NCBI RefSeq assembly: GCF_006345805.1
Contig: NC_042998.1
Location: forward strand, 50,716,001-50,780,000
Direction: 5' to 3'
Length of the DNA: 64,000 bases
Source: Octopus sinensis
Taxonomy: Eukaryota
Each line of letters begins with the position of its first letter. Positions within the stretch are counted from its first letter, which is position 1. The translations under genes were made by a program, and so were the position numbers. The notes under the pieces are model-generated. The model was given only the letters and a program-made list of their open reading frames with translations. It ran no database searches and had not been told where the DNA came from. Positions 5,992 to 61,064 of this stretch are shown here, piece after piece.

Positions 5992-8900
5992 ATCATCATC
6001 ATCATCATCATCGTCGTTTAACGTCCGTTCTCCATGCTAGCATGGGTTGGACGGTTCGACCGGGGTTCTGGGAAGCCAGAAGGCTGCACCAGGCTCCAGT
6101 CTAATCTGGCAATGTTTCTACAGCTGGATGCCCTTCCTAATGCCAACCACTCCGTGAGTGTAGTGGGTGCTTTTTACGTTCCACCTGCACAGGTGCCAGG
6201 CGGGGCTGGCAACGGCCACGGTCAGATTGGTGTATTTTATGTGCCACCGGCACGGAAGCCAGTCGAGGCGGTGCTGGCATCGGCCACGAGTCGGATAGTG
6301 CTTTTTACGTACCACCAGACCAGGGATCCTGGCTGGTTCAATTCGATTTCGATTTCGCTTGCCCCAACATGTCTTCACAAGCAAAGGGGGTTGGCATGGG
6401 TGCCTGTCGTACGGTCGCATTGGAGTATTTTAAGTGCCACGGCCACGAGTCGGATAGTGCTTTTTACGTACCACCAGACCAGGGATCCTGGCTGGTTCAA
6501 TTCGATTTCGATTTCGCTTGCCCCAACATGTCTTCACAAGCAAAGGGGGTTGGCATGGGTGCCTGTCGTACGGTCGCATTGGAGTATTTTACGTGCCACG
6601 GCCACGAGTCAGATAGTGCTTTTTACGTACCACCAGGCCAGGGATCCTGGCTGGTTCAATTCGGTTTCGATTTCGATTTCGCTTGCCCCAACATGTCTTC
6701 GCAAGCATGGGGGGTTGGCATGGGTGTCTGTCGTCGGATGAGGTTCTATATCGACTTCGCTTGCCTCAACCGGTCTTTGTGTCCAAGGGAGGAAAGGCAT
6801 TCATAAGTGGGCTGGGCTCACTTGTCCTGCCTGGTCTTCTCACGTACAGAATATTTCCAAAGGTCTCGGTCTCTGGTCATTTCCTCAGTGAGGCCTAAAG
6901 TTCGAAGGTCGTGCTTCACCACCTCGTCCCAGGTTTTCCTGGGTCTACCTCTTCCACGGGTTCCCTCAACTGCTAGGGATTGGCACTTTCTCACACACCT
7001 ATCTTCATCCATTCTCGCCACATGACCATACCAGCGCAATCATCTCTCTTGCACACCACAACTGATGCTTCTTAGGTACAACATTTCTCTCAAGGTGCTA
7101 ACGCTCTGTCGAGTATGTACACTGACATTACACATCCATCGGAGCATACTGGCTTCATTCCTCACGAGCTTACGCATGTCCTCAGCAGTCACGGCCCATG
7201 TTTCACTGCCATGTAGCATGGCTGTTCGTACACACGCATCATACAGTCTGCCTTTTACTCTGAGCGAGAGGCCTTTAGTCACCAGCAGAGGTAAGAGCTC
7301 CCTAAACTTTGCCCAGGCTATTCTTATTCTAGCAGTTACACTTTCAGCGCACCCACCCCCACTACTGACTTGGTCACCTAGATAACGGAAGCTATCAACT
7401 ACTTCTAGTTTTTCCCCCTGGAAAGTGACGGAAGTTGTTTTCTGCAGATTTTCGGAGGTTAATGCTCCCGAGCATCTGCCACATACAAAAACTATCTTCC
7501 CAGTTAGCCTACCTTTGACATTGCTGCACCTCTTATGTGTCCATAGCTTACACTGGGTACATCTTATAGAGTTTCTACCTACACCTTTTCTACAGATCGA
7601 GCAGGGCCATCTTCCTGAAGATATTTGTGGATTGTCTACCTTTCTACTTATTAGTACTTTGGTTTTAGCTAGGTTGACTCTAAGGCCCCTTGATTCTAAA
7701 CCCTCCTTCCACACCTGGAACTTCTCCTCCAGTTCTGATAGTGACTCAGCAATAAGAGCAAGGTCGTCAGCGTAGAGGAGCTCCCAGGAGCTCCCAGTCT
7801 TGAATTCCTCCGTAATTGCCTGGAGTACTATGATAAATAGGAGGGGGCTGAGTACTGAACCCTGGTGGACCCCAACCTCTACTTTGAATTCTTCTGTGTA
7901 CATGTTGCCAACCCTAACCTTACTTACGGCATCTCTGTACATGGCTTGCACAGTCCTCACCAGCCATTCATCTATCCCTAGTTTCCTCATTGACCACCAG
8001 ATAAGGGATCGGGGGACCCTATCAAAAGCTTTCTCCATGTCAACGAAAGCCAGGTACAGGGGCTTATCTTTGGCTAGGTATTTCTCCTGCAGCTGCCTTA
8101 CCAGGAATATAGCATCAGTGGTACTTTTCCCTGGCACGAACCCAAACTGCATCTCATCTAAACTAACTCTCTCTCTAATTAGTTGGGCTATGACCCTCTC
8201 CGTAACCTTCATTACTTGATCCAACAGCTTGATACCTCTGTAATTATTTGTATCTAGGGCATCACCTTTACCTTTGTAGCAGTTGACTAGTATGCTGCTG
8301 CACCAGTCATTGGGTATGACTCCTTCGTGTATCACCTGGTTGACTATACGGGTGACTAGGTTATAGCTGACACTGCCAGATATTTTGAGCATCTCTGCAG
8401 TAATTCCTGATGGGCCTGGGGCTTTCCCTGTCTTCATGCTTCTAATTGCCTTAGCTACCACGGAACTATCAACTCGGATAGCTGGTCCCTCTGTAGGGTC
8501 AACATTCGGCAGACTCTCTTTATCCCATTCATTTTCCCATTCATTTTCCTCATTCAGTAACCTTTCATAGTGGCGTCTCCAAGCTTCTCTCTTTGCATCC
8601 TCATTTAGCGCAAGTGAACCATCCTCCATGCGAACACATTTCTCTCCTACCACATCACGATTCTCTCTCACACACTGTCTTGCAACACGAAATACCTCAA
8701 GTCTTTCATCCTCACGGCGCAGGACATTGGCAAATTTTCTCTTATCTGCTTCCCCTCTGGCTAGATAGACCTGTCTCCTAGCTTCCCTTCTGGCAGTCTG
8801 ATACCCTTCCCTGCTACCACCGTTCTTCCAGGCCTTCCAAGCCTGTTTCTTTTGTCTAATAGCCCTGTCAACAATATTGTTCCACCACCATGTTATTTTG

Positions 8901-15390: not shown

Positions 15391-15849
15391 CCGAGCCCCA
15401 CAATACCCGAGTTGATTCCTCCTCCTCCAGTGCCACCCAATCCGGGTAGCTGTGCAAAGACCAACACGATCTTTGCACAGAATCCGTTTGATGACCAACC
15501 AATACCATCTCTGAACATGCCAAACAAACAAATGATGGCACATGCCCAACCCGTTGGGCCACCATCTGGCCCCTCTGAGAAGGTCTACCCGCGAAACAAG
15601 TCGATGGTCTTTAATCCTGCCAACCCTAATGCCCCGCCCATCTACCCTTGCGGCACCTGTCATAAAGAGGTTCACGACAGTGACCAGGCCATTCTCTGTG
15701 AGAGCGGCTGTAACTTCTGGTTCCATCGCATCTGCACTGGTTTGACAGAGGACGCTTATCACCTGCTAAGGGCAGAGGTCTATGCAGAATGGGTCTGCGA
15801 CAAATGCCTATCGACCAAAAATATCCCACTGGTGAAGATGAAGCCATGA
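15391..15849 (+). CDS. pygo: Pygopus homolog, terminal coding exon (152 aa: NPF motif of the N-terminal homology domain plus PHD finger)
   Basis: ELIPPPP..IFAQNPFDD matches the Pygo NHD, and YPCGTCHKEVHDSDQAILCESGCNFWFHRICTGLTEDAYHLLRAEVYAEWVCDKC is the Pygo-type C4HC3 PHD. The preceding KVYPRNKSMVFNP segment is also Pygo-like. Stop TGA at 15847-15849. No upstream NLS exon was found in 1-15390. Confidence 0.93.
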   Translation, partial: PSPTIPELIPPPPVPPNPGSCAKTNTIFAQNPFDDQPIPSLNMPNKQMMAHAQPVGPPSGPSEKVYPRNKSMVFNPANPNAPPIYPCGTCHKEVHDSDQAILCESGCNFWFHRICTGLTEDAYHLLRAEVYAEWVCDKCLSTKNIPLVKMKP

Positions 15850-16576
15850 AGCAAGTTTGCCAGAAGAATAAAACACAACAACAACAACAACAACTTCATT
15901 CTGATTTTTTTTTTATCTCCAGTAGTACATCACTACACACATATATAAATATATATATATATATGTATATATACACATTTATATATATATATATATATAT
16001 TTTTATATATATCTTCATAATCATAACACTGAACAAAAGAACTGTTTTAGAATATGATTGCTGCCAAATCAATCATTACTAACATCTTCATATATCATGT
16101 GTCATTCTACAGACAAATCTTTCCTTTTTAAGTTCTTTTTACATTTTTTTTTTATCTTTTACTTTCTTTGAATAAATTAAAAGAAAAAAAAGAGACGAAC
16201 AAACAATAAACACCTCTTGTCAACTAGCAATAAAGAACTAATTGTTTAAAGCCGTCCACTGCATAATAATATCTTCGTGTTAGACAACCTGTATTTTTTC
16301 AAGGCATTGCCTTTGATTTGTTCATGACTACTGTACATTTTTGCTTGACCCTCTTTCTCTCTTTCATTCCCTCTCTCTTCCTCTTTTTGTCTTCCTCTTC
16401 CTCCTCCACTTGATTTAAAACTTATTTAATTTTAGGTTGAAAATTATATTGAACAAAAGTATTCACTCAAGTATGTATTTATTTCTATCATATACATTAA
16501 CACAAATACACACACATATATGCAACAAGGGCAAATGAAATGAAGAAAAAAATACTCAATATTGAAAAGCAAAACA

Positions 16577-16790: not shown

Positions 16791-18917
16791 TAAAAGCAAA
16801 ATGACATATTAGGTTTTATTGAGGCCTGAATAATTTTGCAAGTGTCGCTCCGAATTTCACATAATTGATTTTATGCATGTATGTATACACATACATATAT
16901 ATTCACACATGTATATAATTAATACAGTCACACAGCCTACAGCCTAACTCTTTTATAATACCCTAGGCATGACGTGTACAGTCCATGCTTCAAGTTTGTA
17001 TAGGTGAGAGCTTAGTAGCAGCTCTTGTACACATGCATGCATCACACACAAACACACACACACAAAAATTCTATGCCTAGACCCAAAAATATAGTAAATC
17101 ATTGCTACAATTTTTGTGATTTTTTTTAAGGTACTGGATTACAAGGTTCATGTAGCCCTACTACAACCAAAAAATGTTTTTCTTGAAGTCTCCTTTCTGG
17201 TCAAAACCTTTTTAAGAGTTGGCTGGAGAAAGGGTAACCAATTACAATGATAAAATATTTGTGCCAAAGATTAAGGTATGTAAGTAGCTAAATTTGCTAA
17301 AAACAGAAGTCCCTGCCATTGGGAAGCAAAAAAAAATTATAAATTGACTAAGAGGGAGAAAAGCAATGGAAAATCTAAGGGAAGGATCTAGAGAAAGAGA
17401 AAGGTGTTATTGTACTCCCTATGAAATTCTATGTCTGTCTAGGTTATACTTTCCCTTTGTGCAGATTCTATGTGCATTTTGATATCACAAGTATGTTGTT
17501 GTTGATTGTTGTTGTTTGTTTGTTTTTTTAATTCCTTAAATCTGATGGGTTGTGTTCGAAGCCTTTTTTAAGCCCTCCTAGACTGAAGTTGAAAAACGTG
17601 TATGTTTATGTATGTGAGATGATGATTATCACTTCAAGCTTATCAGTGAATGAAATCAGCCATTGTTCTCTCTTTTTCTCTCTCTCTCTCTCCCACACAC
17701 ACATGCAGCTTGATAAAGATCTTCCCCTAATCACTCCATAACTTTCAGCTTTAGGTACCTAATCTCCTGTTTTTGTTGTGGTTGGAGATATGAAGGGCAT
17801 CTGATAGTTATATTTTTAGGAGTCATTTGAAAAGTTCAGGCTCTATTTTAACATGCTACCCTTCTATATACTGGCACATATCAACTACAATCCATGACTT
17901 ATTCATTTTACTCATTATATTTACAGTAGACTTGTTTCCTGGGTTCCTCTACCTATCACCCAAAAGAAGTGCCATTCAGTTGGTGCAACTACACTTGGCA
18001 GTCTAGCGTATGTCAGAGAGTCATTTCTCTTCTATGTGCATTTGTATACTCAGGATAACATATGATTTGGTGTTTCATTGCAGGTTTGTGTGTGTATGTG
18101 TGTGCATATGTACATTTTCATATTAATTGAATCTCATTATTTCACCTAATTAATAACACTGGATGTGGATGATGCAGCTGTTCCTAATATATATATGTAT
18201 GTTGGTTCAAACAGGTAAAATTGAACTCGAATATAAACTCACAAGCCTTCGACTTGTGATTAGCTTGATGAAACTCTCAGACCTTGAGTCACTCTGTTAC
18301 TTCTGCTAAATATTAATATATATATATATATATTATATATATATATATATATATAATATATATATATATATATAATTATCAAAGTTGGGAGATAAGTCCA
18401 GAGCTTATAGATATAAAAGTAAATAAATAATTAATATACTCTTTTCCTTTGTTAACTTTGTTTGATATATATATATATATAATATATATATATATTCTAC
18501 TTTGGATGATGATATAGCTAGCATGCAAACAAAATTATACATGATATTTGTTGAGAGTGCTTTGTGTCTTTCATATATATATATTTATATATATATATCA
18601 TTAACAGACAAAATTCTAAAGCCATTCAGCAATATTAGATTAACACTGTAACTGATAGACAGTAGCTATATTCATAGGTAGACACTTGCTATACTGATAG
18701 CTTTTCATTGAGGTGGCGGTGCTTCTGTTACTGATTATGGTTAGCATGAAAGGTGATATATCTTATTTATAACTAATCCAACACAATGCCAGAATGGTAG
18801 TAATGATAATGATATCAACATATCATGCTGACATGAATTGGATAACTCTGCAATGTCTTACATCAACTTTCTTGATTGGTTAAAATGAATGCTGACGACT
18901 AATGGTAGTCTGCTGGT

Positions 18918-19003
18918 GTGAACGACTCACGGGATTCTTCAGGTTGCCATTGTGGCATGTGAATTCCAATATGGTGACTTGAAGAATTGCCTGAGTCTTT
19001 TGC
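18918..19003 (+). ncRNA. Candidate pri-miRNA hairpin
   Basis: 18924-18955 pairs with 18966-18997: 32 positions with 24 Watson-Crick pairs, 4 G-U pairs and 4 mismatches, and a 10-nt loop CAUGUGAAUU. The stem extends to about 18917/19004. Confidence 0.5.
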
Positions 19004-19333
19004 AAGAGGAAACAGCCAGTAGTTGCCTCTACTGACTTCAGCTAACCAAAATAAATTAATACTCACAGTATTGAGTACTTTTTCCTTTATTCTTTATTAT
19101 TAATAAATGTGTGTATGTACGTATGTGTGTGTAATGATATATATACATACAGACACACACACACACACACACACATGCATGCATGCTTGTTTGGTTTAGT
19201 AGTTTGCTTCTCAACCACATGATTCTGGGTTCAATCTCGCTGCATGATACCTTGGGTAAGTGTCTCCTACCTTAGCCCTAAGCTGACCAAATCCTTGTCA
19301 GTGAATTTGGTAGATAGAAACTGAAAGAAGCTC

Positions 19334-19376
<43 letters not shown>

Positions 19377-21569
19377 TATATATGTGTTTGTGTCCTTATT
19401 CTAACATCTCATGTCAACATCATACTAACAACGTCATTCATTTCCTTTTTTTTTTTTTTGTGGAAACATGTCTGGCTAAGGGGAAATATTACCTTGTTTG
19501 CAAACAGGTGAGGGTAACAGGAAAGGCATCCAGCTGTAGAAAAATTTCCTTGACAAATTTCATCTTACTCATGTAAGTATGAAAAAGTAGATGTTAAAAT
19601 GATGACAGTGTAACCTGGTGCAGCTCTTGTCAAACCGTCCAACCCATGTCAGCAGGGAAAATGGATGTTAGATGATGATGATGATGATATATGTTTGTGT
19701 GTGTGTCATCATCATATTAATGTGAACTTTTACATACTTACATGGGTCAGGTGGAATTTGTTGAGACAAATTTTCTACAGCTGAATGCCTTTCCTGTCAC
19801 AAACCCTCACCTGTGTCCAAGCAAGGTTATATTTACCTGTGACCTGATATGTTTTCACACAAGATTAAGGATATATATACATATATGTATATATACCTCG
19901 CTGCACACACACATCTGAGTGTAGAAATGGGAGAAAAAGTACTCAATACACATAATAGAGTTCATTCATACTGTCAACTGTCAAAGCTGGGTTCTTTTTT
20001 TTTTTCACCTGAAGGATCTCACAAAGCAGGGAAAGTCTGAGTAGTGACAGAATTAATCATCAACTTCAAATGAATGTGTATACATGCCTTTTTTTTTTTT
20101 TTTTTTTTTTTGGTGTGTATGATATGGATTTACATATGCTAATGCAAGTTAAGGCATCTACATACACATTACATTTAATATATATCATATATACACTCAT
20201 GAATATCTGCATAGATAACAGTCCACACATACGCACCTCTTAATCTCCCTTTCTTCTGGTGCTACTAAACAGCTCATCTCTGTAACCAAAATATTTGCAC
20301 CATGCTGACAGCATCATTTTCTTACCTAAGTAGTCTCTCTATTATTTACAACCTACTTACTATAAGTATTATTCTCAACCTCTCTCTCTCTCTCTACAAA
20401 TACACACCATACATATATATATGTGTATATATATATATGTGTGTGTGTGTAAAGAATTAATATACATGCTCATTTAGATTCTATCCAGACAGGAATATCA
20501 GAAGATTATTATTGTTATGAATATCATATGATTTGATTGTCTTCTATTTCATTCAATTCTGTCTTCTGTGTCTAACATTCTGTATGGAATCTGTTGAACA
20601 TCAACTTATAAATTTGCCAAACTCTGACCTCTTTTCTCACAATATATGGTAATATAAGGACAAACTCTTTAAACTCTTCTTCTTATATTAACCTCCACAC
20701 ACCATTACATCCTCCTCCTTCTTCCTTCTTTTACTTCTTAATTTTCTACTTGATATTAAACATTATAAACATGAATTTGTAACAGGAATGCAAAACAACT
20801 TTATTAACGAGGTCGTCGACCAGCAAGCAGTAGATAGGTACATACGTGATTCAAATCTCTCATCAGCATGCCTGCTTTTTCCTTTCTGTCTCAAATTGGT
20901 ATTCATAATGTCTAATATAACTTCATGTTGAAAATCTAAGCAGTTATCATACACACACACAATCTGTCTGTTATCATTATAAGTTCTATATTTCAAGTTT
21001 TCTTTTTCTCTCATTCTTCTCCTTTTGGTATCATCTATTTCTTTCTCTTTTCAAGATGTTAACTCTGTTCTTCTAACTTATTTGAAGGAATTCTTGCGTG
21101 TAAATCTCTAGAAAGTGTGTGTGTTTATTATCAAATATATACATAATCATAAGACTTAGAAATTCCCTATTCACAAAAAAAAGAAAAGAAAAGAATCCAG
21201 TATGGACAATGTAATAGATAGAGTATGTAAAATGTATTATAGTTTATTTTCACAAGTTGTAACATGTTTCAGCTTCAGAGAAAGAATGAAGATATAAAAG
21301 AGATAAATGAATTGCAACTTATAAGAATAAACTAATATATATATATAATTATAATAATAATAATAGGGAGTACAACTCCAAACTTACAGGGAAAAATTCA
21401 ATTTCACATTTCTATATATAGTATATATATATGCTTTTATGTATTTGTTTTGCAAGATTTCTGATGTCAAATTTTGTGTTCAAACAGGTATTGCTATATA
21501 TCAGAATGGTTATTTTTTTAAATTAACACATGCAAAATATATTTGTTCCTCACTTCAGCTTTATTGTTA

Positions 21570-21784
21570 ATACTGTTCTATATTTTTCAGATGAGGAATT
21601 ATGTACATTATTTACAATGGACGGATAGTGTCCTCACTTTGTTTGTTGTTATCACAACATTTCAGCTGATGTACTCTCCAGACTTCATCAGGTGTTCTGG
21701 TGGGATTTTGAGCCCACCAGAACACCTGATGAAGGCTAGAGAGTACATCAGCTGAAATGTGGTAACAACAAACAAATTGAGGAC
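21570..21784. mobile_element. Fold-back element with hammerhead-core arms (Penelope pLTR-like)
   Basis: Inverted arms 21630-21704 and 21713-21784 with an 8-nt spacer. Each outward-reading arm has CTGATGA-A-stem II-GAAA (plus copy 21726-21757). Confidence 0.75.
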
Positions 21785-21811: not shown

Positions 21812-22004
21812 TCCTTTGTCTTAAATCTTTCATCACACATCGTGTGACCTCTTCAGCAACTCTCCTTCCACATGTCTTCTCCTGTCCTATTTAGTCCAAA
21901 AAAAAAAACAACAGAATGGACTAAACAGGACAGGAGCAGACACTTGGGATGGAAAGTCAATGAAGAGGTCACAGGATGTGTGACGAAACATTAAAGGCAA
22001 AGGA
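21812..22004. mobile_element. Second fold-back element with hammerhead-core arms (different family)
   Basis: Inverted arms 21812-21897 and 21918-22004. Plus arm reads (A)TGAAGA-G-GTCACA-GGATG-TGTGAC-GAAAC; minus arm reads CTGAAGA-G-GTCACA-CGATG-TGTGAT-GAAA. Confidence 0.65.
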
Positions 22005-24380
22005 ATAAGGACAATAATAAAACTGGAATAAAGAACAAGTTTATATTGTGTACATTTATTTGGCAAAAAAAAATTGATCATCCTTAAATATAATAGTGTG
22101 TGTGTGTTGTACTTCTTTGCATTTAATTCAATCTGAGGTAGTATGTTGAAACAAACAATTGTATCATAATATAGTTCTGATAGTCATTTAGAATACATAT
22201 ACACTGTTATATTCACTTGTGTTTCATTTTATGTTAGTACATTTTCAGTGAAAGAGTGTCAACATATGTGTGTGTGTGTGTGTGTGTTTATATTTACTAA
22301 GCCGGGGTAAAAGTTTAGAATTTTAAAGATTAGGTCTAATCTTGTCTGATTCTATTCTTCGGTTAAAGAATAAACTGCATTGCTGTTGGAAATAGAATCT
22401 CTTGAATAACTGAAATATTAAAATGGCCTGGTTATCAAGCAGTTGATAAAAGTGAAAAATAAAAGTTAACTTTCTTTCTTGGGTTCATCTCCACAAAAGG
22501 GCTATAGTTCTGAAAGGGCAACAATATATGTCTTGAAGTTTACCAAGAGCGTTTATTCCTTCTTTTTTTTTTTTTTTTTTTTTTCACCTCTTTCTTGCTC
22601 TCTCTTCCTTGCCAAGACAAGCAAAATATCTGACTATCAAACTTGTTTGATTTAAAATGTATGATCAGAAAAAAAAAGGTAGCAAAACAAAATTAAGATA
22701 TGGCCAGTCCAAGCTTAAATTGTAGCTGGATTTAAATGATGTCTAAAGCAATGCTGTGCAACTTAACACATCATGGATGCAGCTAAAGATTTAGTACGCA
22801 CCATGTGTGTTTTTATATAACTTCCTCAAATTCCTTAAAATGAAAATATAGATTCAATTCCTCTTATAAATAAAAATTCTTAAACCCTTTTGTTACCATA
22901 TTTCTGTTGAAATACACATTTCCCTTGTTTCGATTAATTTATAAAATCTTTTCTACGGGTGGCACAAAGCCTGAAATCTTTTGGGATGGGGGCTAATTGG
23001 TTACATCGACACCAATAATTGTTGTCATCATTAGGCAGGGTGTTTGGAACATAGATTAGAATGAAACTTTGAAAGGAAGGTTTTTTTTTAATTAGATCGT
23101 TTTAAACTGGAAATGTTCATCCTAGACCAGGGGCAATCTCGGGCAGGTTGGTTATCAAAAGGGTGAAAACAAATTTCATTTAAATTAATTTTTAAGAAAA
23201 GAAAAAAAGCAAACACCAGTTTTATCGCAATCTATTTTTCACACTATATCATCATATTATTGATGAGCAGTTTGTTATTTAAGAAATTTACAGTAACACT
23301 CCCAATCTTCAAGTTATATTTAAAAAAAAAAAAAAAAGAAAGAAAAGGAAAAAATAAATGAAGGAAGGAAGAAAGACGAAAAAACTGTCAAGTTAGCATC
23401 TCTTGATTTGTAACTTTTCAGTTAATCAGCTTCGAAACTGTTTCAGAGCTTCAATGTTCTTATCCTGGTTATAAGCTTTCCTACTGTCTGTTTTATATAT
23501 GTTCTTTAGAACTCATGTCTGTCCTTCCCTCTTGTTCTACATTTACATTTTTGTAATGTAATAATGTATGTACATGTTTTTAACCGATCAAGCTTCGACC
23601 TTTTTTGGCTGTTGCTTTGTCCCCAAAAGTTTTTTTTTTTTTTACTGTTTTTGTATTTTTTTTTCTATAATTTTTATTGTGCCTATACTGGCATTATATA
23701 TATACTCTTTATATGTACTGGCTTTCAGTCTTTTGGCTGAGACCATACCGAGAGTTATGTATATATATATGTTACAAGGTTTGAGATTTTTTATTTGAAG
23801 CCCTGTTGCGTGTTATATATGTAGTATGTAATTTTATATCCCAAACGTATCCCAATGTTATTTTTTGTAAGCTTTTGTCCGTGTATAACACTTCCCAGAA
23901 ACTGCACACACATTACTCTGTGTAATGTATTTTCTAATAAGCAGTATCACATCAATGATACGTATATGTATATATATATATATGTGTGTATATATGTGTA
24001 TGTATGCATATGTATAATATGCATACATATATATATATGTAATATGTACATGGATATATGTATATGTGTGTGTGTATGTATGTATGTATATATATATATA
24101 TGCATATATATATATGTATGTATAGATATATGTGTGTATGTAATATATGTATGTATATGCACACACATATATATATTCCACTCTTCAGATGATAAAGACT
24201 CTAAGTGGTTGTAACAACAGAGATGTATGTTTGTTTCCACAAAAACAAAAAAAGAAATATTCAACCTGTAACTTCTTTTAATTTTTATTTTAAAAAAAAA
24301 ATTTTATTTTATTTTTTATTTTTATTTTTATTTTTATTTTTTATTCTTTGTCTTTATATGGAATGAAACAAATCAGTGGT

Positions 24381-24555: not shown

Positions 24556-24935
24556 GGCACAGGTGTGGCTGTGTGGTAAAAAGCTTACTTCTCAGCCACA
24601 TGGTTCTGAGTTCAGTCCCACTGCATGGCACCTTGGGCAAGTGTCTTCTATTATTACCTCGGGCCGACCAAAGCCTTGTGAGAGGATTTGGTAGATGGAA
24701 ACTGAAAGAAAACATCATATATATGTATATGTTTGTATGTCTATGTTTGTCACCCTGCCATTGCTTGACAACCAATGTTGGTATGTTTACATCCCCTTAA
24801 CTTAGCAGTTCAGCAAAAGAGATTGATAGAATAAGTACTAGGCTTACAAAGAATAAGTCCTGGCATTGATTTCTTTAACTAAAGGTGGTGCTCCAGCATA
24901 GCTGCAGTCAAATGACTGAAACAAGTAAAAGAAAA
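24556..24935 (+). mobile_element. S2 SINE, full length
   Basis: GGCACAGGTGTGGCTGTGTGG head, GAGTTCAGTCCC, CCTTGGGCAAGTGTC, internal TA tract, tail ending GAAACAAGTAAAAGA. Confidence 0.88.
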
Positions 24936-24956: not shown

Positions 24957-25576
24957 ATGGCTGTGTGTTGAGATGCTTGCTTCCCAACTGCAAGGTTCCA
25001 GTTTCAGTCCTGCTGTGTGTCACCTTGGCAAGTGCCTTCACCTGCACCTCAGGCTCACCAAATCATTATGAGTGGATTTGGTTGACAGAAACCGAAAGAA
25101 GCCCATTGTATGTATGCATATATATATATATGGCCAGTGCCGCCTGACTGGCACTCATGTCACTGGCACATAAAAAGCACCATTCGAGCGTTGTAGTTGC
25201 CAGTGCTGCTTCACTGGCTTCCATGCCAGTGGTATGTAAAAAGCACCATTTGAGTGTGGTTGATGCCAGTACCTATTTCTTTATTACCCACAAGGGGCTA
25301 AACACAGAGGGGACAAACAAGGACAGACATAGGTATTAAGTCGATTACATCAACCCCAGTGCGTAACTGGTACTTAATTTATCGACCCTCATGCTGGTGG
25401 CACGTAAATAGCACCCACTACACTCTCAGAGTGGGTGGCATTAGGAAGAGCATCCAGCTGTAGAAATCTTGCCAGAACAGACTGGAGCCTGGTACAGACT
25501 TCTGGCTTCTCAGTCCTCAAGCAAACCGCCCAACTCATGCCAGCATGGAAAGCAGACGTTAAATGATGATGATGAT
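24957..25576 (+). mobile_element. Nested composite: S2 head, RTE 3' tail (25131-25576) in its TA tract, S1 fragment (about 25271-25390, minus) inside the RTE tail
   Basis: Successive matches to the three families; the RTE tail ends in GATGATGAT followed by ATATATAC. Confidence 0.75.
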
Positions 25577-25599: not shown

Positions 25600-25926
25600 T
25601 GTGGCCATGTGGTAAGTAGCTTGCTTACCAACAACATGGTTCCGGGTTCAGTCCCACTGCGTGGAACCTTGGGCAAGTGTCTTCTATAGCCTCGGGCCGA
25701 CCAAAGCCTTGTGAGTGGATTTGGTAGATGGAAACTGAAAGAAGCCTGTCATATATATGTATGTGTGTTTCTCTGTTTGACAACCGATGCTAGTGTGTTT
25801 ACATCCAAGTAACTTAGCGGTTCGGTAAAAGAGACCGATAGAATAAGTATTAGGCTTACAAAGAATAAGTCCTGGGATCGATTTGCTCAACTAAAGGTGG
25901 TGCTCCAGCAGTCAAATAACTGAAAC
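25600..25926 (+). mobile_element. S2 SINE
   Basis: Head GGTTCCGGGTTCAGTCCC, CCTTGGGCAAGTGTC, tail to GGTGCTCCAGCAGTCAAATAACTGAAAC. Confidence 0.85.
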
Positions 25927-25976: not shown

Positions 25977-28900
25977 ATACATATGCATGTATATATATAT
26001 GTATGTGTATACATATGCATGTATATATATATATATAGGTATGTATATATATATGTATGCATATATATACATATGTATATATATATATATATATATGTAT
26101 GTATATGGGTCTATATATATATATATCAAGAGACCCATAAAATAAGTACCGGTGGCAATCAAATGACTGCAACAAATAAAAGAGAATACATGATTGAGTC
26201 AAAGGAAATCAAATAAATAAGCATTACATTTGACACAGTAATCTTAATTGTGAAGGGTCAACAACATTTTTTGGCTGACTATATCTTCTATAATCCCAAT
26301 AAGAAATCTGTTGACCTGCTAGAAATAGTAGTTTATCTCCCTTAAATAATGCACTACAGTGATAAACGAAAAAACTCATCTTGAATAATGTAGCCCTTGA
26401 TACACTATTTCTCTTAACAAGAGGTGATAATAGCAGCTGGAATGTTATTGATTATTGGTCTGTTTGTGTTCACCTGGAGCCAAAGAACAACAAACAACCT
26501 CATTTTTAAATAGATACCATACAATGTTACAACGTATCTTCTAAGAAGTTGGACTACCATAAATTTCATGAGTCTCCTTTGATGTTTAGTTTGGTCAGTT
26601 CTGATAAGCAGACTTTTGATCAAAGGCCTTCTATATATACCACCCTATATTTTATATATATATATATATATACCTCTTTTTCTTTTACTTGTTTTAGTCA
26701 TTAGTCTATATGTAGCCATGCTTGGGCACTACCTTGAAGGGTTTTAGTCAAATGGGTCAACTCCAGTACTTCCTTATTATTTTTTTTATTAATAGCCCTG
26801 ATACTTATTCTGTTTGTTGCTTTTGCTGAACCGCTAAGTTAGAGGGACATAAACACACTAACACCGGCCGTCAAGCCATGGTGGGAGGCAAGCACAGACA
26901 TAAAAACACACACACAAGCACACATATATACATACAAGGCTATAGTTGAATACACTTGCCTAAGATGCCATGCAGTGGGAATGAACCCAGAACCATGTGG
27001 TTGGAAAGCAAACTTCTTACTACACAGCCATATTGGACCTTATCCAATATGTCCTACTTTTATGACTGTAGAGAGTGATTTGACTGTTATTTCTAACTTG
27101 AGCATCTTTAATTATGTTGTAGTGCTTTCTTTTTTTATTTCATATTGACAAAATAGTAGAGGAAGAATGGATGAGACCAGTATATTTAAACATTCATTTC
27201 TTAGCCCCCTCAACTAAAGTATGGTTACTTTATTTATTAACTTGGATAAGATAATAGTAAAATCAAATAAGATAAGATAAATAGTAAAGGGAGATGAAAT
27301 AAATACTGCAAAGCATTCTGCCAATTTCTCTCCTTTGAACTATCAAGGTTAACTTAATTAAATTTCTCTTAAATTACCTCCTATCATCTTAAAAGCAAAA
27401 GGACATACTGTCTATGAGGTTCTAAATACAGAAGACTTCAGAAAAAAGCAAGATGAAATGGTTCTGCTCCATCAGTGCTGGCCTGGTGCTACATAAACCA
27501 CTTCTGATTCTTGTTTCTTGTAGTCCTTTCAACATTTAAACCATCCAGGGTAAATGCCAAAGACCTCCTTCGGTCACAAATGACCATGGGATTGCACCCC
27601 AAAAGTCCCTCTCCAAGGCATAAGTCCGGGCATGGTTATTTGTGGAAGATGAGCTGTGTCCATACATTATCAGCCTCCTCTCCCCGTGCCTCTAATGTTG
27701 TCCAAAGGAAAGGCAAAGGTCAATACAGCTTGGCACCAGCGACATTGCAAACAGCCATATCCAGCCCAAAATATTCTACCAGTTTAATGTTCAGACTGAC
27801 CAGATCTGGCCTCTTACACCTACCCAACAATGTCATTCAAAATATAAACAATCACATCACTGAAATCTTAAAGCTACAAGATAATGTATGATTAATTCAA
27901 ATCAGTGTGAATGAATTCACATTACATTTGATAGAGAAATCTGAATGGTAAGGAAACCCGATTCAGCCCCTTTAAATCAAAGAACTCTAATATCAATAAA
28001 CCAACAAGCATGCCTGCCTGCCTTTTTGCCATGGTCCTGGATAATGATAGAAGTATGTCCCTCCATAAGTTTGTTTACCTAATTTTATCAATCTAGTGCA
28101 GTGCTAGTGTTACTAGCCATTCTCAATTAACCAGAAATTCATGAAGTAAGGAGGTAAAGTGTGCTAATTTTGGTATTTACCTACAGCACTAGATGTCAGA
28201 TTGACAGTCATGAGAGCACTGGATAAAATGTTTTGCAGTATTCTGGTACCTTATATTCTGAATTCAAATCCAATTGACATCAACTTTACCTTCATTCTTC
28301 CAAAGTTAATAGATCAAGTACCAGTTTTAAGCAGTAGAAAGGCAAAATTGTTAAAGCATCAGGCAGGGTACCTTGTATTTGTTTAGGATCTTTGCATTCT
28401 GAGTTCAAACTCCAACAAAGCCTTCTTATTAGACACCTAATTTATCATCCAATTTAACATCTACACCTGGTATTTGAAGGCCTTCAGCAGAATCAACTTT
28501 GTTGCAAGCATTTTGGCCTGGTCCGATCTGATTTGATAATAACTTCTTTCCTCACTCCAATATCAGAGGCCCTGTTTATGTATTTTCACAAGATATTTTT
28601 AAAATTTATAAAACTTGAAGCCCTTTTAATTAGATAATTAAAATCTTGACATGGTTGTCCACTTGCCTGTATTTTCCAGCAGGGATTGCCACGAATTTTT
28701 CAAACCAAAATTTGCAACTAGAAAAAGTTAAATCAACTTATAGAATAAAAAAAAACTTTGGAGAACCAAAAGTTGCATGTGAAATGCAGCAGAATTTGAA
28801 AAGATAATGACAATGTTTGACTGTTTGCAATACATGCTTACACTATATGCTTTGTCAGCTTGTATACTGGAAAATATGTTTCTCAGGTCTTTTGCCCCAC

Positions 28901-29988
28901 CCACCTCCATGAATCTGGAATTGTATAGTTGATAATAGTAATATTTCATCCAAAAGAGGCATCTTCTATGCAATCATTGTTTAACTCCAGGTTAGTTCTA
29001 ATCAAGCAGGTATTCTGCATCCTCATGAGAAGTGGAAGCTTTGAGAATAGTTCTTGATGTGTGTCAAATTACCCATAGTTGAAATTTCATAAACATTGAA
29101 AATTTATGAATTTTCATGGGGGTTCTGCCCCCTTTAAGCCATCTGAAATTCAAACCAAACATATTGCATTATACACGCCCTTGTGCATTGAATCTAAATT
29201 CCAAATATCATAAGGATCCATTCAGTAATTTTGGTCCATGAAATTGTATAAAACACACAACATTGCCCTTCTCCGTAGGCTTGGATTTTGTGTTCCAAAT
29301 TTCATTAGGATCGGTGCAGCAGTTTTCAAATGTATAAGTAACACATGAACTCACATGAAGATATTGACTTTTATATAATAGATATGAATATGCACATATA
29401 CATATATGTGTGTGTGTGTGTGTATTATATATATATATACACACACACAAATAAAACGATAAATTGATAGGTACAACTGAGTGGGCAAATAGAAATATGA
29501 GACACCGCCTAGAGCTTTTTTTTATTTTGATAAGCCTGGCACTTATTCTATAAGTTTCTTCTTGTCAGACCAGTAAGTTATGGGGATGTAAATAAACGAA
29601 CAGCAGTTGTGAAGCAGTGATGAGGGAGAAACACAGAGACAAAGTCACACACATACACTTAAATATACACATACATATATATACGATTGATTTCTTTCAG
29701 TTTCTGCCTGAAAAATCCACTGACAAGGCTTTGGTTGGTCTGAGGCTATAGCAGAAGACACATGTGAAGTCACCACACAGTAGGACTGAACCCAGGACCA
29801 TGTGTTTTGGAACCAAGTTTGTTACCATGCAGCCACACTTGCACCAATGTATATATATATATGTGTGTGTGTATGGGTGTATATATGTATGCATGTATAT
29901 GGGTGTATATATATATGTGTACATATTACATGTACACATATATACATCTCGGTCTGTAAATATATATATATATGTATACCTGTATATA

Positions 29989-31208: not shown

Positions 31209-31516
31209 GGAGGCGCAATGGCCCAGTGGTTAGGGCAGCGGACTTGTGGTCGGAGGATCGCAGTTTCGATTCCCAGACCGGTCGTTGTGTGTGTTTATTG
31301 AGCGAAAACACCAAAAGCTCTAGGAGGCTCCAGCAGGGGGGGGGACTCCTGTTGAACTCTTTCACCCCAACTTTCTCTCACACTTTCTTTCTGTTACTTG
31401 AGTAATACTGCGATGGACTGGCATCCCGTCCAGTTAGGGGAAACACATATGACACAGAAACCAGGAAACTGGGCCATGAGTCTGGCTAGGCTTGAAAAGG
31501 GTGCATAAAAAAAAAA
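31209..31516 (+). mobile_element. tRNA-derived SINE, family S4, with V-SINE-like motif and poly(A) end
   Basis: A-box TGGCCCAGTGG (31219-31229), B-box GTTTCGATTCC (31263-31273), CTGCGATGGACTGGCATCCCGTCCAG (31408-31433), then an A tail. Confidence 0.75.
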
Positions 31517-60773: not shown

Positions 60774-61064
60774 TAGAGGTTTTCCATTAATACAAAAATT
60801 TTCAAATGAAGTGGCAACATTATAGAGAAGGTAGATATACAGACAAAGATGTAGATTTAAATTTTAAGAACATATGAGGTAGTGAAGTCCAACCACTGAC
60901 TGACCAAGCTATGGCTGTACCTAACATAGCTTGGTCAGTCAGTGGTTGGACTTCACTACCTCATATGTTCTTAAAATTTAAATCTACATCTTTGTCTGTA
61001 TATCTACCTTCTCTATAATGTTGCCACTTGATTTGAAAACTTTTGTATTAATGGAAAACCTCTA

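Follow-up and report, generated by a model that had tools for sequence, protein, structure and literature searches.

Coleoid cephalopods gained approximately 90 microRNA (miRNA) families, the largest such expansion known among invertebrates. Deep sequencing of 18 Octopus vulgaris tissues and of Octopus bimaculoides yielded 164 O. vulgaris miRNA genes, and the 90 novel families described there, a count that the authors term an underestimate, comprise 12 that are cephalopod-wide, 43 that are coleoid-wide and 35 that are restricted to Octopus (Zolotarov et al. 2022, PMC9699675). These novel families do not co-occur on scaffolds (PMC9699675). The hairpin described here lies in a 64,000-nucleotide stretch of Octopus sinensis DNA (contig NC_042998.1, positions 50,716,001 to 50,780,000), hereafter the window, at positions 18918-19003 of the plus strand (CM016860.1:50,734,918-50,735,003, if forward orientation is assumed). 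The window shows 100% identity to chromosome CM016860.1 of GCA_006345805.1, the assembly onto which Zolotarov et al. reportedly mapped O. vulgaris data. It resembles the Ovu-Novel families (PMC9699675; MirGeneDB) in being present in octopuses of the O. sinensis/vulgaris type and in O. bimaculoides and absent from distant cephalopods, in being single-copy and of canonical dimensions, and in having no other candidate hairpin near it. Unlike those families, it is known here from sequence alone, has no seed match in the searched portion of the published data, and carries a substitution in each arm between the two Octopus species, as established mature miRNAs rarely do.

Microprocessor substrates can also be embedded in messenger RNAs, as are the hairpins of the DGCR8 mRNA and miR-198 in the 3' untranslated region (3'UTR) of FSTL1. 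Like these, the octopus hairpin is on the sense strand downstream of a coding region, that of pygopus (pygo), and close to a poly(A) signal, so that processing and mRNA fate could compete; unlike them, it lies approximately 2.7 kb downstream of the probable end of the main pygo 3'UTR. A third point of comparison is the origin of young miRNAs, for which inverted duplication or template switching is a recognised birth route, with the mir-548 family as an example derived from miniature inverted-repeat transposable elements (MITEs). The stem described here almost certainly began as an inverted duplication too, but the hairpin is not locally multicopy, its arms are approximately 29% diverged, and RNA pairing is kept on one strand only. 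The best explanation, to which we assign a probability of roughly 0.35, is that this is a pri-miRNA-like hairpin of the Octopus lineage, single-copy and on the pygo strand, whose shape has been maintained and which may be a substrate of the miRNA pathway. A neutral inverted repeat is nearly tied with it.

Folded on its own, the plus strand of 18918-19003 forms one single hairpin with a minimum free energy (MFE) of -42.5 kcal/mol, as against -19.1 ± 3.1 kcal/mol for dinucleotide shuffles (z = -7.65), and 0 of 200 shuffles match its stability. Folding with shuffling was among the checks named in a preliminary description of this DNA, and it places the hairpin beyond random sequence, which is why an inverted duplication is the almost certain origin of the stem. 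The fold, like that of the orthologous sequence, is a symmetric 41-position stem with an apical loop. When position i is paired with position 87-i across these 41 positions, 29 are Watson-Crick pairs, six are G.U, none are A.C and six are other combinations. The resulting 35 pairs are interrupted by three 1x1 mismatches and one 2x2 internal loop, beside a small apical region; the arms are equal in length, with symmetric internal loops and no bulges. The stem measures 33 positions as far as the first 2x2 internal loop, or 41 if followed to the tetraloop. The 32-position stem with four G-U pairs that had been described earlier corresponds to 18924-18955 paired to 18966-18997, and its proposed extension to about 39 positions is borne out by five to six further pairs, out to 18918/19003. 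The 10-nt loop containing UGUG is likewise present, as CAUGUGAAUU at 18956-18965 with the UGUG at 18958-18961; it is invariant between both Octopus species, and RNAfold places two weak A-U pairs within it.

The structure is specific to the plus strand, as had been suggested from its wobble pairs. The reverse complement folds with an MFE of -28.2 kcal/mol (z = -4.6), approximately 14 kcal/mol weaker, and a covariance model of the hairpin scores 119 bits on the plus strand as against 49 bits on the minus strand. Six G.U to no A.C combinations has a binomial P of 0.016 under a neutrally decaying inverted repeat, a value that needs a multiple-testing discount, since the hairpin had been picked for its asymmetry in the first place. 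When both strands of the whole 64-kb window are folded in sliding 86-nt segments (mean -13.3 kcal/mol, s.d. 6.5), lower energies are reached only by perfect palindromes (at 60877, 21665 and 21865) and by TA/TG microsatellites; the hairpin is thus the top imperfect, non-repetitive hairpin of the window. Pair probabilities in the helix are approximately 1.0 in contexts of 900-1100 nt in both Octopus species.

Two of these palindromes, both near-perfect, are found 2.7-3 kb downstream of the hairpin, at 21665-21750 (-69 to -84 kcal/mol) and 21865-21950 (-48 kcal/mol). Their stability is the same on either strand, and in O. bimaculoides they are present with broken pairs and indels, so that their decay appears neutral. 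The third, at 60877-60962, is the strongest hairpin of the window (-72.9 kcal/mol): its 37-bp inverted repeat is perfect and encloses a loop of 11 nt. The O. bimaculoides locus does not extend to it.

Beyond the core, the 5' flank (18876-18917) can pair weakly with the 3' flank (19004-19047), where 11 unpaired nucleotides (19004-19014) precede the weak pairing. The outermost contact joins TTGGTTA (18876-18882) with TAACCAA (19041-19047), and the extended fold reaches -70.1 kcal/mol. When the core is kept constant, the flanks of this foldback of approximately 170 nt (18876-19047) contribute a z of -2.2, only marginally above chance, and their pairing differs in O. bimaculoides. Pairing that is near chance and not conserved in detail leaves the 86-nt core as the unit, and the 170-nt foldback was rejected in that role.

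In its fold and dimensions, the hairpin looks like a miRNA precursor. MirGeneDB 3.0 gives as yardsticks at least 16 paired arm positions, with an observed mean of 19 ± 1.6, a loop of at least 8 nt, with a median of 15-16 nt, and a length below 80 nt for mollusc pre-miRNAs (PMC11701709). In every register that starts between 18930 and 18935, 19-20 of the 22 arm positions are paired; depending on the register, a loop of 10-20 nt separates the arms and the pre-miRNA would be approximately 56-62 nt. Registers were placed by the Microprocessor rulers, which count 13 bp from the basal junction and 22 bp from the apical one. Either 18918/19003 or the C.U mismatch 18923/18998 could serve as the basal junction, and Drosha could therefore cut anywhere within 18930-18937, a span of approximately 7 nt. 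The candidate zone for a 22-nt 5p arm is accordingly 18930-18958, with a start predicted at 18930-18937, and that for a 22-nt 3p arm is 18965-18993. The arms named earlier, 18934-18955 and 18968-18989, have a geometry that allows 2-nt overhangs, and they represent one register among several rather than a unique prediction. The 3p arm is the more likely guide on this model, since its 5' end is at the weak, loop-proximal end of the duplex and begins with A or U.

The sequence motifs that accompany processing are partly present. A basal UG at 18919-18920, noted in the preliminary description, falls at -14 if the 5p arm starts at 18933 and at -15 if it starts at 18934, as proposed there; together with the apical UGUG it completes the expected pair of processing motifs, both of which are short and of low information. 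A CNNC motif is absent at 16-18 nt past the 3' Drosha cut; the only examples are at 19013 and 19026, the nearer of them approximately 20-26 nt past the plausible 3p ends at 18988-18993. The CNNC motif is facultative. The mGHG/CmR motif is partial: the C.C mismatch 18930/18991 is 1-7 nt below the possible cuts and fits either a C at -5 or a mismatch at -6, never both in one register. G.U wobbles occur at arm positions 10-12 in several registers (mid-BMW). A stem of about 35 bp with single-stranded basal segments is expected of a miRNA precursor, and 11 nt are unpaired on the 3' side here, yet the flanks can pair further with the z of -2.2 given above.

If the hairpin is a miRNA precursor, RNA polymerase II would transcribe it within a long isoform of the pygo 3'UTR, at its distal end, or in a transcript of its own; in both cases the RNA would end at the conserved AAUAAA at 19050. 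Microprocessor would measure approximately 13 bp up from 18918/19003 or 18923/18998 and cut within 18930-18937 and 18988-18993, and Dicer would then take off the apical region of approximately 10-20 nt to give a 22-nt duplex. The likelier guide would be the 3p strand, with a start at approximately 18968-18971 (AAUAUGGUGAC...). We infer transcription, cleavage, arm choice and any regulation of targets. The prior for any such hairpin is low, as stable hairpins far outnumber miRNA genes in this genome.

The evidence that the structure has been kept comes from O. bimaculoides. The ortholog (locus L002, 52972-53057; CM046602.1:46,600,916-46,601,001, if forward orientation is assumed) is 3.2 kb past the pygo stop of that species and has an identical fold, at -44.5 kcal/mol. 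Three substitutions separate the two sequences (18930 C>U, 18944 U>C and 18977 A>G). The first is at the C.C mismatch and unpaired. The other two are stem partners: position 18944 is U in the window and C in O. bimaculoides, position 18977 is A in the window and G in O. bimaculoides, and the pair changes from U-A to C-G, so that 35 of 35 pairs are standard in both species. In a neutral simulation with a substitution rate of 0.053 and a transition fraction of 0.65, both measured on 7.5 kb of local alignment, three random substitutions leave every pair unbroken with a probability of 0.12 and give a compensatory double with a probability of 0.013; the joint probability is 0.006, or 0.0045 without conditioning on three substitutions. 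In the palindromes at 21665 and 21865, which served as controls at the same divergence, there are five pair-breaking substitutions, several indels and no compensatory change. The G.U pairs adjoining 18944/18977 remain G.U in both species, which argues against conversion of one arm by the other at the DNA level and for tolerance at the RNA level.

The primary sequence is no better conserved than neighbouring DNA. It has three substitutions where 4.6 are expected (P = 0.33), and its identity of 97% compares with a surrounding background of 93-95%. Real conserved miRNAs usually keep the mature arm invariant, and here both arms have changed between the Octopus species. The covariation involves a single pair in two close species, a number of sequences at which a shuffle control is without power. 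On balance, constraint on the hairpin at the RNA level is slightly favoured, because of the 6:0 bias towards G.U, a substitution pattern with a probability of approximately 0.005 and the contrast with the control palindromes; caution is due because of the low prior, the lack of sequence conservation and the single covarying pair. If the structure is indeed constrained, a substrate of Microprocessor and Dicer is more likely than another kind of double-stranded RNA (dsRNA) element.

It may be, almost as plausibly as the miRNA reading, that the hairpin is a neutral relic, a functionless product of an old inverted duplication or of template switching, which has yet to decay. The compensatory pair and the G.U bias would then be coincidences, amplified by the choice of the best-looking hairpin, and the discount due on the P of 0.016, together with a comparison that consists of two close species and one covarying pair, makes such a coincidence easier to accept. 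Inverted repeats are common, and the window holds three stronger palindromes, which would be examples of neutral decay; the hairpin shows no excess conservation of its primary sequence, and it has left no trace in Argonauta or in the more distant octopod locus L003, as expected of unconstrained DNA. Neutrality has more difficulty with the joint probability of approximately 0.005 for a stem that acquires a compensatory double and no break, a figure that already allows for the local rate and the transition bias, and with the 6:0 ratio of G.U to A.C. The arms have also stayed equal in length while diverging by approximately 29%, whereas the control palindromes gained indels. Gene conversion is a poor way out, as it would need a single-nucleotide tract between unconverted G.T mismatches.

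As far as testable, the hairpin is confined to the Octopus lineage. In Argonauta hians, collinear islands bracket the expected site, with 17493-17631 of the window corresponding to 23763-23910 of the 30-kb Argonauta locus L004 and 23408-23500 corresponding to 26819-26915. No counterpart of the hairpin was found in this syntenic interval or elsewhere in L004 by BLASTN, by a covariance model with filters off or by local alignment, in which a positive-control island scores 98 and the hairpin 22, the same as shuffles. The same methods found none in L003, an ENA contig from a more distant relative in which the pygo exon retains 75% nucleotide identity. The sole strong covariance-model match, to a palindrome within the syntenic Argonauta interval at L004 25361-25448 (36-38 bits on either strand), is one of structure only and was rejected as a homolog: it scores equally on both strands, has approximately 35% arm identity, and its arms are multicopy repeats that match dozens of sites in every locus. 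It is a caution that long-stem covariance-model matches need a sequence check. The appeal made earlier to the many lineage-specific miRNAs of coleoids thus narrows to the Octopus lineage, and the conservation in other coleoids that had been proposed as a check extends to the second Octopus species, in which no pair is broken, and stops short of Argonauta and L003.

The hairpin lies downstream of the pygo stop, as first described, at a distance of 3.07 kb and on the same strand. The last coding exon of pygopus, with its PHD_Pygo domain, occupies 15412-15849 on the plus strand (the stop ends at 15849), and the open reading frame (ORF) shares 99% identity with the protein of O. bimaculoides. From pygo to approximately 25.8 kb, neither Octopus assembly has a further protein-coding gene call, and Argonauta has none within 10 kb downstream of pygo. 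Downstream of the exon, the block 16029-16328 holds four AATAAA/ATTAAA signals and is more conserved than the flanks of the coding exon; it is likely to be dense in regulatory sites. Within it, the proximal poly(A)-signal cluster (16171-16234) is in sequence that is 99-100% identical between the Octopus species. The median octopus 3'UTR is 350-380 nt (PMC9699675), and the distance from the stop to this cluster fits that median, so the main pygo mRNA probably ends there, with a 3'UTR of approximately 320-380 nt.

A second AATAAA signal, at 19050-19055, follows the hairpin by 47 nt and is conserved in O. bimaculoides, with a T-rich stretch and then TG repeats downstream of it. It is a possible 3' end for a hairpin-bearing transcript, which could be a rare long pygo 3'UTR isoform or a transcript of its own. 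A Logan transcript contig of pygo breaks off 185 nt past the stop, within CT-rich sequence, and pygo itself was not found in the searched portion of Data S3 of PMC9699675. Between the pygo stop and the hairpin, the sole large indel relative to O. bimaculoides is a TA-rich low-complexity tract of approximately 300 nt (18229-18528), which is largely absent or rearranged in that species.

These surroundings bear on a further, less likely explanation, in which the hairpin is a cis-acting dsRNA element other than a miRNA precursor, at the end of a long pygo 3'UTR or in a downstream non-coding transcript. It might serve as an ADAR editing or binding substrate, as a Staufen-type site, or as a destabilising hairpin that is cleaved by Drosha and gives no stable miRNA. 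Such an element shares the evidence for structural constraint with the miRNA reading, and its position would suit it: it is on the pygo strand, a conserved AAUAAA follows after 47 nt, and the unique sequence that holds it gives way to repeats. The collinear islands at 16146-16268 and 17493-17631 suggest transcribed or functional sequence past the proximal poly(A) cluster, and some of the published octopus 3'UTR alignments exceed 3 kb. A cis-acting role would also account for the absence of the hairpin from the miRNA catalogue, if it is absent. The required 3.2-kb isoform is hypothetical, however, and sits poorly with median 3'UTRs of 350-380 nt (PMC9699675) and with the conserved proximal cluster; the one transcript contig that was found is uninformative on the matter. 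The form of the hairpin also counts against a cis-acting role. Where a 35-bp hairpin is conserved and combines small, symmetric internal loops with a flexible apex, it is more often a miRNA precursor than a member of any other class.

A more elaborate version, which we regard as improbable, would make the hairpin a switch that ends a rare long pygopus 3'UTR isoform, with Microprocessor, ADAR or Staufen acting on it to destroy or re-route that isoform. Were this so, an Octopus-specific small RNA could also be released, and the dosage of the Wnt pathway, through the mRNA of a Wnt co-activator, would be coupled to the miRNA machinery in a lineage-specific manner.

The copy number of the hairpin was judged in approximately 220 kb of octopod DNA, comprising the window, the rest of the O. 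sinensis locus (L001), the O. bimaculoides locus (L002), L003 and the Argonauta locus (L004). No non-self match to any part of 18350-19100 occurs there, whereas true repeats in the same DNA give up to 77 matches per tile, so the concern raised at the outset that the hairpin might be a multicopy remnant finds no second copy to sustain it. A scan of metagenome contigs for exact 32-mers of the hairpin gave 0 matches. The unique block 18350-19100 ends where repeats begin, at 19100. That it is one copy of a dispersed inverted-repeat element, a transposon-derived foldback or MITE remnant, is very improbable: the inverted repeat can be extended weakly to approximately 170 nt (18876-19047), microsatellite and SINE-like copies crowd the adjoining sequence from 19100 onwards, and octopod genomes do carry multicopy palindromes such as that at L004 25361-25448, but repeats score tens of matches where this sequence has none, the additional pairing hardly exceeds chance (z = -2.2) and is not the same in the two species, no target-site duplication or flanking direct repeat is evident by inspection at the outer ends (where element boundaries are undefined), and neither strand-biased G.U pairs nor a compensatory change is expected of a dead transposon.

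SINE-like multicopy elements occupy 19190-19900, immediately beyond the unique block, and further copies occur near 24629-24711, 25050-25116, 25666-25749 and 29691-29756. These elements have tens of matches across all octopod loci, Argonauta included. On the minus strand, the hairpin is overlapped by ORFs of 55 and 41 amino acids, neither of which was found in protein records. Four matches of these ORFs in a representative protein library are artefacts, in which 3-7-bit matches are summed over the internal repeats of repetitive proteins.

The seed was not recognised in the preliminary description, and searches of Rfam, whose miRNA families number approximately 1,000 or more, agree: there is no gathering-level match in the whole window, in 17-21 kb at E<=10 or for the hairpin alone. 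The best match on the hairpin, mir-4504, scores 24.9 bits against a gathering threshold of 104; the likeness is one of overall hairpin shape only, with no similarity in arm sequence, and the hairpin is not a member. Matches to mir-297, mir-466, mir-3688 and others at 19100-19185 are artefacts of a TG/CA-TA microsatellite, which occur on both strands and score up to 53 bits against gathering thresholds of 84-90. Sixteen candidate seed-site 7-mers, drawn from both arms, are absent from the portion of Data S2 and S3 of PMC9699675 that was searched, a comparison that is under-powered, as this portion covers approximately a third to a half of the families and contains two of six sampled Ovu-Novel names. 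The arm sequences are likewise absent from all searchable main texts, and from the supplements of PMC9699675 and of its preprint. The hairpin is possibly an unannotated young miRNA, or possibly one that is already catalogued.

Should the hairpin prove to be processed, the Octopus-restricted set would gain a further young, single-copy miRNA. Its origin in an inverted duplication, its strand-biased G.U pairs and one compensatory change within approximately 50 My would then point to a hairpin that is being moulded into an RNA structure or retained as one, and its position on the sense strand behind pygopus, upstream of a conserved poly(A) signal, bears on how such hairpins relate to host transcripts. 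If it yields no small RNAs, it would illustrate that thermodynamics, motifs and a single covarying pair are insufficient to call a miRNA. Either way, the gain is incremental and not conceptual.

Two other features of the window are of note. The block of approximately 90 nt at 23408-23500 is 92% identical between Octopus and Argonauta (L004 26819-26915), by a wide margin the highest identity downstream of pygo, and a conserved acceptor-like 'ttttcag' precedes it on the plus strand. The block has no fold (z of approximately 0 on both strands), is outside called genes, and corresponds mostly to an N-run in O. bimaculoides. It may be a conserved regulatory element, or else an exon that is missing from the annotation, in which case the hairpin might be intronic to a plus-strand transcript. 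In the last pygo intron, the segment 6000-10000 has a GC content of 0.48-0.50, as against approximately 0.35 elsewhere, and its branched, GC-rich, repeat-like folds at 6013, 6193 and 9345 resemble copies at 31209 and 44481.
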